Shown here piece by piece: positions 1 to 2,580 of a stretch of DNA of 64,000 nucleotides (its first letter is position 1; every line of letters begins with the position of its first letter). The stretch comes from Entomortierella parvispora E1425. Lineage: Eukaryota; Fungi; Mortierellomycota. The notes beneath the pieces are model-generated. The model made no database searches and had not been told where the DNA came from. It saw only the letters and a program-made list of their open reading frames with translations. The translations under genes and the position numbers were made by a program. Location of the stretch: positions 1,054,001 to 1,118,000 of the forward strand of contig BQFW01000014.1 in assembly GCA_020891255.1 (NCBI GenBank). Reading direction: 5' to 3'.

Positions 1-150
1 TTAGTTTGTTGTCTATTGTATTTCTTTTGTTGTTCTTCTTCATGCTTGCTATAGACCAAATAATAGTATCCTTTCCTTGATGCAAAGTTCTGCTATGGGA
101 TGCTGTCAGTGGGCGGAAATGATGATGACGATGCAGGGTATAAATATTGC

Positions 151-178
151 TTAGAGTTTCGGGTGAAGGTTCTGTGCC
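151..178 (-). CDS. IPP1: Candidate alternative terminal exon of IPP1 encoding (V)AQNLHPKL*, a PTS1-like tail
   Basis: Donor GTAAAT at 553 overlapping the stop codon; CTAAC branch point at 227-223; pyrimidine tract; CAG acceptor at 181-179; in-frame join ending PKL-TAA at 151. Confidence 0.65.
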
Positions 179-549
179 CTGTGGAGGAATGAAACGGAGA
201 AAAAGAGAGGGAAGGAGAGAAAGTTAGTAGTGCCATCCACCAAATGTTTCTCTTGGTATCCTTCTGCCGTGGCCCACCCTGCATGAGGCTTCTCTCTGTA
301 GGGTTCTTTTTTGTTATTTATTACAAAATCATCCACACCAATCGACTTGATGATTCGATAGGAGAAAATGACCTTATGGATCTGAAAGGTATGAAAATGG
401 AGAACCCATCCCGCAGACATTTACAGACCCCAACTCTTTTTTTGTAGTGGAAAAGTGTACGTTGGAACAACAAGAGGGATGAGAGAAAGAAAAAAAAAGT
501 GGGAAAAAATACACTGAAGGGAAGAGGAGAAAAAAAAACAATCAGATAT

Positions 550-1941
550 TTACACCCTGTTGACGTAGAACCACTTGTCGATGGAGCCGTCGATGGGAGC
601 AGCAGGCTGGCGAGAGTCGGCAGGAACGCTGGTGACAATGGGGTTCTGGGCATCAACATGGCCAATGCTGTTGGCAACAGTGACGTTGCTCCTGTTGGTT
701 TCAAGACAAAAAAACAAAGTTAGAACATCATCATATTTTTATCTCTCTTGACCTTACAAAACAGGACAGAAAAACCAAGCAGATGGATGATCAATTGTAG
801 CTTACACTTTGACTTCTGAGGGGGTCTTGCCAGACATCAAACGGGTCCAGGCCTCGTGAGTGTCCTTGACAACCTGGAGGGCGTAGTCTCTGTTCTTGGC
901 AGCGCCATCGAAAGCAAACTGGTTCTCGGGCTTGCCATCGGGGATCTTGTAGATGCGGAACCAGTCACGGGTGGCATCAATGAATCCGGGCATGTTCTTC
1001 TCAATATCCTCAATGTCGTTCAACTTCTCGGCCAAAGGATCGTTGACATCGATAGCAAGAAGCTTCCAGTCAGTCTCACCTAGATAAAATGAACAGGCAA
1101 AAAAGTTGCCCCACCAGGAGTATTGTTAAGATTTCATCATATGAGCGTGGATGTGTGTTCATTGTCATATCTAAATTTGTCATTTTTTTTTACCTTCATC
1201 CAAGAGAGCCATAACACCAAGAACCTTGACCTGCTTGATCTGACCAGTGTAGCCAATGGCCTCACCAATCTCGCAGACATCAACGGGATCGTTATCACCC
1301 TTGGCGCCAGTGTCCTTGTCGACGTGAGTGGGGTCCTCCCAGGTCTAAAATATATCAAGAGTCGAATGTCACACGCGTTTAGTACTAACCCGACAAAAGT
1401 AATCCGCATCTTATCTGCAAATCCTTTGCTCTTTTTTTTTTTGCTGATCCGGATCTACACACACGACACAACCAAATCACCGCCACCTCCCGAGTGACAA
1501 AAAAGAATCCAGCCGTACCTGGGGAAGAGCACCATAGTTCCAGATGTAACCCTTGTGGGGGAAGGGGTTGCGGACGAAGCGGAGCTTGCCCTTCTTGACA
1601 TCCTGCTTGATGGGGTTCAACTCATCATCCTTGGAGATCTCGAGCTTAGCGTTGGACCAACGGGGAATCTCAACAATCATGTTGAAGACGTTGTTGGCCT
1701 TGTCAGCGTAGAGAGGAACGTCGTGGAAGGCGGAGACGGGGGTGCCCTCCTGGTTCTCTAAAAGTCGAGGTATCCGTCACCATCAAGCGGAAGGAAGGTG
1801 TTAGCAGAGAGGCACCAACGAAGGCGCGAAATACAGCTTTCATCAGAATGTTTGAAAACAAGACGTGGCCTTACGGAGGTAAACACGGTAGTCGAGGGTG
1901 TTGGGGGCACCGATGACACGGGTGGTGAATTGCTGGGACAT
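550..1941 (-). CDS. IPP1: Inorganic pyrophosphatase (family I), 5 exons (1941-1875, 1757-1519, 1344-1194, 1079-806, then a last exon to TAA at 550)
   Basis: [21 protein letters not shown]..., [47 protein letters not shown] and [18 protein letters not shown] motifs; canonical GT-AG introns join in frame. Confidence 0.97.
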
Positions 1942-2580
1942 GTTGAAGGCTGAGGAGTGGAGGGTGCGTGCACGGATTGGGGAGTGAAGGGATGCGGTGC
2001 GGAGGAGGCGGACGCTTGTAGAGATCAGGGAAGCCAGGATGGAAAGGGGAAAGGGAAGGAAGAGGTGTGGGAAGCGAATGGAACAAAGGGAGGAATATGA
2101 AGGGCGACTTGGTGACATCGGCATCGAGTGACTGCTGCTTTGATCTGGTTCTTGCGCCTTCCCAGTGCACTCCGGGCTGGAAGCATTGCAAAGGAGGCGT
2201 CTGTTCTTGTTAATTGCTCCGCCTTCCGCAGTTCTGCACAAGTCTATGGCTGCTACCGAGATGCATCGGTTGTCCTTCAACAACCTTTCTCTTCTCGTAC
2301 AGTCAGGAAAGCCAGTGCTTTTTGCGATATCGCGAGGCTTTTCGACGCGATTGAGTCACGTGCTCAAAATAATGCCCCACTTTGAAAGGCACGGTGGCTT
2401 GTGTTGTTATGGCGAGCAAAAAAAGAAAAAAGCAGACGCCCAAGCAAAAGAAGACCCAATGGTACTCTGAATGTTGTTCTCGTCCACTCCTCAGTCTCAT
2501 CTCCTCACTGTGTAGCTGCCCTTCCTTCCTATCCCTTTCCTTTCATCTACCCACCGTTCCATCACACCTACACATACAGC

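Follow-up and report, generated by a model that had tools for sequence, protein, structure and literature searches.

The IPP1 gene of Entomortierella parvispora, which encodes a soluble inorganic pyrophosphatase, probably has a genuine alternative last exon, used in few transcripts, that would add a PTS1 to the enzyme, a reading to which we assign a probability of about 0.55. In the proposed scheme, most IPP1 transcripts would be cleaved and polyadenylated near a conserved AATAAA (about position 300 of the window, the whole 64,000-nt stretch of DNA analysed) to give the ordinary protein ending in YVNRV, and a minority would read beyond this presumed proximal poly(A) site. From these longer transcripts, splicing would excise 375 nt (553-179) as an intron with a donor that shares bases with the stop codon. 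The spliced protein would end in AQNLHPKL, Pex5 would read PKL as a PTS1, and the resulting small pool of pyrophosphatase in peroxisomes may clear PPi from acyl-CoA synthetase reactions. Judged from alignments with relatives, the comparative prediction is borne out in a manner that seems hard to put down to chance.

The IPP1 gene and candidate splice signals past its stop codon

In the E. parvispora assembly GCA_020891255.1 (contig BQFW01000014.1), the minus strand of the window carries a five-exon IPP1 gene at 1941..550. The translation of this model is identical to the 290-aa NCBI protein P0267, 'inorganic pyrophosphatase [Entomortierella parvispora]', with a precomputed PF00719 assignment, and its identity of 60-76% over the whole length with fungal IPP1 proteins places it in the family I soluble inorganic pyrophosphatases (IPP1/PPA1 type). 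All four introns are backed by spliced RNA contigs of run X2. The next gene downstream, encoding a cation channel (Ion_trans), is convergent; it terminates at a stop codon 133 nt ahead of window position 1, which puts an intergenic region of 682 nt between the two stop codons. The features are as follows.

550-1941, minus strand: IPP1, family I soluble inorganic pyrophosphatase (model translation identical to P0267; PF00719; introns skipped in RNA contigs)
1941-1875, 1757-1519, 1344-1194, 1079-806 and 691-550, minus strand: IPP1 CDS exons (290 aa, ending in YVNRV and the stop)
548-553, minus strand: candidate 5' splice site GTAAAT, which shares bases with the TAA stop (552-550) and takes its G from the third position of GTG, the final Val codon
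310-331, minus strand: conserved block TTTGTAATAAA with AATAAA at 322-317, within the candidate intron; probable proximal polyadenylation signal of the ordinary mRNA
223-229, minus strand: candidate branch site TACTAAC, placed 45 nt before the acceptor AG; its CTAAC recurs at the aligned position in the soil-metagenome contig L017 and in Gryganskiella
179-222, minus strand: pyrimidine tract (222-182) and CAG acceptor (181-179); ACAG is identical in the three taxa compared, and the tract is pyrimidine-rich with differing sequence
151-178, minus strand: candidate terminal micro-exon, G GCA CAG AAC CTT CAC CCG AAA CTC TAA, encoding V-AQNLHPKL and a stop with the preceding GT
136-142, minus strand: TATACCC, shortly past the micro-exon stop, kept in the three taxa after a spacer of varying length
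1-115, plus strand: 3' UTR of the Ion_trans (cation channel) gene, from gene calls in L003 and a 1806-nt X2 RNA contig reaching 115

The last IPP1 codons, TAC GTC AAC AGG GTG TAA, occupy 567-550 of the minus strand with the stop at 552-550, and the ordinary protein ends in NRV with no PTS1. The first-pass annotation described a donor overlapping this stop together with downstream splice elements, all of which lie where it placed them. When 554 is joined to 178, the frame runs through ...YVNRVAQNLHPKL into TAA at 153-151; sequence and translation thus confirm the in-frame protein end ...YVNRV-AQNLHPKL, the last 12 residues of this predicted form being VNRVAQNLHPKL. The annotation also likened the donor to a GTAAAA donor used elsewhere in the gene, and this is the donor of intron 3, the use of which is shown by the RNA contigs. 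An alternative donor, GTGTAA at 555, was rejected, as it yields a long non-conserved tail. TATACCC at 136-142 may act as a signal for a distal 3' end, or it may belong to the 3' end of the convergent gene.

Two properties of the arrangement count against an alternative exon. At 375 nt in E. parvispora, 383 nt in L017 and 277 nt in Gryganskiella, the candidate intron exceeds the other IPP1 introns two- to threefold in length, and the distal 3' end of a spliced form would overlap the mRNA of the convergent gene. The frequency with which such an arrangement arises by chance was estimated from 5000 dinucleotide shuffles of the 3' flank with the donor fixed. An AG-led, in-frame PTS1-like tail, defined as at most 30 codons ending in [SAPC][KRH][LMI] and a stop, appears in 6.3% of the shuffles, and in 0.12% when a CTRAY branch site, a pyrimidine tract and YAG are required in addition. 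The latter value is rare for a single gene but permits false positives genome-wide, and the verdict therefore rests on conservation.

Conservation of the candidate micro-exon in relatives

Three taxa of the A type (see below) were compared, namely E. parvispora, Gryganskiella cystojenkinii and L017, two of the three being close together. L017 shows 91% identity over the C-terminal half and shares the downstream region, and the synteny RRP14/SURF6 - IPP1 - Ion_trans is common to E. parvispora (L003) and Gryganskiella (L005). The latter two have 76% identity between their IPP1 proteins and differ at 33% of four-fold degenerate sites; their four IPP1 introns are unalignable, the shared stretches being no longer than 9-13 nt. 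The conservation of donor, acceptor and PTS1 tail expected under the first-pass annotation is found in both syntenic orthologs: the donor, CTAAC, the ACAG acceptor, the reading frame, PKL and the immediate stop are all kept in Gryganskiella and L017, and the distance from CTAAC to the acceptor is similar in the three taxa. The predicted tails are AQNLHPKL in E. parvispora, AKNLHPKL in Gryganskiella and AKNLQPKL in L017, each followed directly by a stop, which is TAA in E. parvispora versus TGA in the other two. The amino-acid changes among them fall at -7 (Q/K) and -4 (H/Q), none in PKL, and the last 12 residues are devoid of acidic residues in all three. Directly past the micro-exon stop, Gryganskiella has a 10-nt insertion.

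The micro-exon is 93% identical to that of Gryganskiella, as compared with 89% for the CDS tail and 26-53% for the neighbouring 3' UTR segments. The best HSP of the 682-nt intergenic region against Gryganskiella comprises 30 nt with one mismatch (E 3e-10) and extends exactly from ACAG to CTCT. This 30-nt island coincides with the predicted micro-exon and is the sole strongly conserved island of the intergenic region. The block TTTGTAATAAA (331-310) is 100% identical in L017 and 73% identical in Gryganskiella, with flanks of 26-28%.

At the nucleotide level, the micro-exon shows zero synonymous changes at wobble positions across the three taxa, and three of its eight codons (GCA, CCG and AAA) each occur at most once elsewhere in the gene, yet are unchanged. 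Selection on the peptide alone would let such rare codons drift, which points to a constraint on the nucleotides themselves. A constraint of this kind is known for small alternative exons. All three taxa have GTG as the last Val codon, which supplies the G of the donor; it is the sole GTG among the 31 Val codons of the Gryganskiella gene and one of two among 26 in E. parvispora. That a rare GTG is kept at the donor counts for the alternative-exon reading. The donor region GTGTAAATATCTG is identical in Gryganskiella (L005), L017 and L004. Conservation of the donor as such is not specific evidence, however, since CTGTAAATA is present at the stop of two B-type loci without the micro-exon. At 554-547 the donor sequence doubles as UGUAAAUA, a core of Pumilio/Puf3 type, which could explain its conservation just as well.

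UGUAAAUA over the IPP1 stop (window 547-554, minus strand) is found in L005, L017, L004, L090 and L091 as well, and about 30 nt further downstream comes another conserved block, TTCAGTGTAT (window about 518-509); from their sequences, both are possible 3' UTR regulatory sites. Another short sequence, TGGTATAGAATTGC (L003 8007-8020 / L005 4500-4513; 65-78 nt before the window start), is kept in all three taxa and sits in the 3' UTR of the channel gene near the channel stop codon.

Searches for other identities of the island gave negative results. It shows neither an Rfam match above noise nor a conserved structure, and it lacks consistent C/D boxes, so that a snoRNA or other RNA gene was rejected; a repeated motif was likewise rejected, the sequence being unique in the window with no second copy. 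A search of the representative library with exon 4 returned mostly fragments and no close ortholog. A metagenome scan for the degenerate micro-exon gave zero matches with a pattern that demanded CAY at the His codon and thus could not match the CAG of the L017 type.

RNA evidence

The only RNA run used, X2, was read as Logan contigs; it is one of three indexed runs labelled 'DNA?', with none listed as RNA, and comes from the same sample as the genome run. Its contigs skip exactly the four IPP1 introns and X2 is therefore an RNA data set of this strain. The IPP1 contig, at a depth of about 400, extends without a break from exon 5 past the stop and the candidate donor at 553 to position 373, which shows the ordinary unspliced IPP1 mRNA directly. 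From the opposite side, the contig of the channel mRNA (1806 nt, depth about 54) reaches 115. Positions 116-372, including the micro-exon, are uncovered, and the contigs, which drop rare forms, contain no 554|178 joint.

Since the IPP1 contig stops at 373 and 116-372 is uncovered, the bulk mRNA end probably lies upstream of the branch site. The contig end is just upstream of the block TTTGTAATAAA, in accordance with the AATAAA at 322-317. Because this AATAAA block falls inside the candidate intron, only the minority of transcripts that escape it could be spliced, and any such form is minor in the X2 sample. As contigs lose rare variants, the missing joint is weak evidence against the spliced form and does not refute it. 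Of the two forms proposed in the first-pass annotation, the cytosolic-type mRNA retaining the intron is thus borne out by the contig continuous past the stop, while the spliced form has no counterpart among the contig joints. The further suggestion that one gene serves three compartments finds no support in the contigs, in which IPP1 sequence begins at 2004.

This 5' end is only 63 nt upstream of the ATG at 1941. The N-terminal extension that had been proposed to reach 2124 (window 1942-2124) lies mostly outside the assembled transcript; contigs can miss rare longer 5' ends.

Alternative explanations of the conserved island

The main rival to an alternative exon is a shared element for 3'-end formation or termination, as the channel mRNA probably ends near the island. 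In its general form, the island would be a non-coding element between the convergent genes, either such a signal or a protein-binding site, possibly for the Ion_trans mRNA, and the PKL reading would be coincidental. We consider this the less probable account, with an appreciable chance of being right. It readily accommodates the invariance of every wobble position, three rare codons included, and the Ion_trans contig reaching 115, together with a TATAAATA-like plus-strand motif at about 131-142, suggests that the 3' end of the channel mRNA is at or near the island. It also agrees with the lack of a spliced contig in the X2 RNA, and conservation of the donor could be explained by coding constraint plus UGUAAAUA. 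On the other hand, a non-coding element offers no reason for the borders of the island to be exactly the predicted acceptor and the predicted stop codon, or for the stop to be kept despite the TAA/TGA change and for an indel of a length not divisible by three to come after it. Upstream on the IPP1 strand, a consensus branch site is also preserved together with a pyrimidine tract, and the failure to find an Rfam family, a conserved structure or a second copy in the window argues in the same direction. We know of no fungal poly(A) signal that resembles a GC-balanced 30-mer, which also counts against a non-coding element.

The island could also be read on the plus strand as an alternative 3' exon of the convergent Ion_trans gene, with an open frame ...EFR[V/L]KVLCPV... 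after TTAG/TCAG, a very improbable explanation. YAG is present at the island border in all three taxa as the reverse complement of the TAA/TGA stop, and in the alignments the Q/K change is synonymous on the plus strand (CTG/CTT) and the H/Q change becomes Val/Leu. Yet the region before YAG is purine-rich in E. parvispora and L017 and has no consistent branch site, the frame continues through four to six unconserved codons, and no donor is known. Moreover, the annotated C-terminus of the channel, ...VRLS and the stop, is itself conserved, and the RNA contig is unbroken from the channel CDS past its stop to 115, with no joint. A chance arrangement without function in the 3' UTR is the least credible of all: a genome-wide scan will yield such patterns now and then (0.12% per flank with a donor at the stop), but an island of 93% identity among neighbours of 26-53%, next to a gene with unalignable introns, and the E value of 3e-10 for the best intergenic HSP are difficult to obtain in this way. 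The alternative last exon of IPP1 remains the preferred reading.

Related dual-targeting systems

Dual localization in cytosol and peroxisomes by alternative splicing is known for 6-phosphogluconate dehydrogenase of Candida albicans, likewise a fungal enzyme of central metabolism that acquires a peroxisomal signal via a minor splice form, though it is another enzyme with the signal at the other protein end. GAPDH and PGK of Ustilago maydis and other fungi obtain cryptic PTS1 motifs by alternative splicing or readthrough (Freitag et al., 2012, as cited in PMC9549241; Stiebler et al., 2014, PMC4207609). The likeness to IPP1 is that a housekeeping cytosolic enzyme has a PTS1 behind its normal stop, with the tagged form in the minority and the tail conserved among relatives. 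The present case differs from GAPDH and PGK in concerning IPP1 in the early-diverging fungal family Mortierellaceae, in that the donor overlaps the stop itself, and in that a probable proximal poly(A) signal within the intron would impose a choice between polyadenylation and splicing, the spliced IPP1 form being a predicted one.

For the same enzyme, inorganic pyrophosphatase has been proposed to reach peroxisomes 'by various mechanisms' (Stiebler et al., 2014, Fig. 6; PMC4207609). A peroxisomal form is proposed to arise by readthrough for C. elegans pyp-1 and mammalian PPA1/PPA2, by alternative splicing for Drosophila Nurf-38, and by an N-terminal PTS2 for U. maydis Ipp1 (PMC4207609); pyrophosphatase activity in rat liver peroxisomes is among the work cited there, and a 2022 review repeats the peroxisomal isoforms. 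These examples resemble the present one in enzyme, destination and rationale, that is, removal of PPi from ATP-dependent fatty-acid activation, and Nurf-38 also in gaining a C-terminal PTS1 by alternative splicing. They differ in lineage and in having an independent gene structure, and the only fungal case among them uses PTS2. Stiebler et al. (2014) had already proposed peroxisomal pyrophosphatase isoforms by several mechanisms, alternative splicing among them, which makes the idea less novel than the first-pass annotation implied. A literature search returned nothing on peroxisomal pyrophosphatase isoforms in Mortierellaceae. What is new here is the lineage, the stop codon as part of the donor and the probable poly(A) signal inside the intron; the principle was known.

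The annotation was right to call PKL a known PTS1 variant. Fused to a fluorescent protein, -PKL is enough for peroxisomal localization in Histoplasma (PMC13343957), and a change from AKL to PKL barely alters PEX5 affinity (PMC6770196). PKL is also cited as working in human, yeast and Penicillium, and it serves as the PTS1 of several fungal siderophore enzymes (PMC3709128). These results concern the tripeptide in fungi and elsewhere rather than this particular tail, and AQNLHPKL is a predicted PTS1.

IPP1 clades in Mortierellaceae

The full-length IPP1 family was reached via a scaffold alignment from the exon translations, and a tree was built, in which the Mortierellaceae IPP1 proteins form three groups, A, B and C. 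Members of the C clade have 296 aa and end in -FISGTSNL, a tail common to Glomeromycota. Those of the B clade have 293 aa, are located at ICE2-IPP1-HAUS1 and end in -SNL, -SNI or -SNM. The A clade, consisting of E. parvispora and Gryganskiella cystojenkinii (support 100/97), ends in -NRV or -NNV. Among the clades compared, the micro-exon is confined to the A clade. It is absent from the B-type loci of Gamsiella, E. chlamydospora, E. beljakovae, Mortierella sp. GBA30, M. polycephala and Dissophora, where the locus differs from the A type and only about 100-270 nt separate IPP1 from the next gene.

SNL is a weak PTS1-like tripeptide, and IPP1 enzymes ending in it may be partly peroxisomal without splicing; a human SNP-to-SNL variant gained PEX5 binding comparable to that of PKL (PMC6770196). 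The IPP1 tails of Mortierellaceae and Glomeromycota and of paralogs are represented by P0270-P0296, P0314, P0331 and P0371, and a Syncephalis protein ends in -ASNL. A pyrophosphatase homologue of about 50% identity, the JGI metagenome protein P0194 (308 aa), ends in the canonical -SKL.

E. parvispora IPP1 is on a long branch (0.40, as compared with 0.058 for Gryganskiella). Neither a B- nor a C-type IPP1 from E. parvispora is present among the top 120 matches or the clusters listed, and this fungus may rely on a single divergent IPP1. Its locus matches that of Gryganskiella and not those of its congeners E. chlamydospora and E. beljakovae (L003/L005 versus L001, L006-L008 and L090-L092), which reflects either differential paralog loss or a genus that is not a natural group for IPP1.

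Implications for peroxisomal metabolism

The fate of PPi released by peroxisomal acyl-CoA synthetases is poorly documented, and proposals of hidden peroxisomal pyrophosphatases have relied mostly on sequence. An independent and conserved example from the oleaginous Mortierellaceae would lend weight to the idea that selection maintains a small peroxisomal pool of the enzyme. Its gene design would be unusual as well, with a stop codon that is part of a splice donor and a poly(A) site inside the intron. A broader and quite speculative model, which we regard as unlikely as a whole, is that Mortierellaceae, and perhaps early-diverging fungi generally, routinely share pyrophosphatase with peroxisomes: the widespread paralogs would do so by a weak constitutive -SNL, and the clade of E. 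parvispora and Gryganskiella would instead use a stronger -PKL gated by the choice between polyadenylation and splicing at the stop-codon donor. If such routine sharing and gating were true, the supply of the enzyme to peroxisomes could be regulated. The tail offers a simple target for localization and lipid-metabolism experiments in an industrially relevant fungal family.
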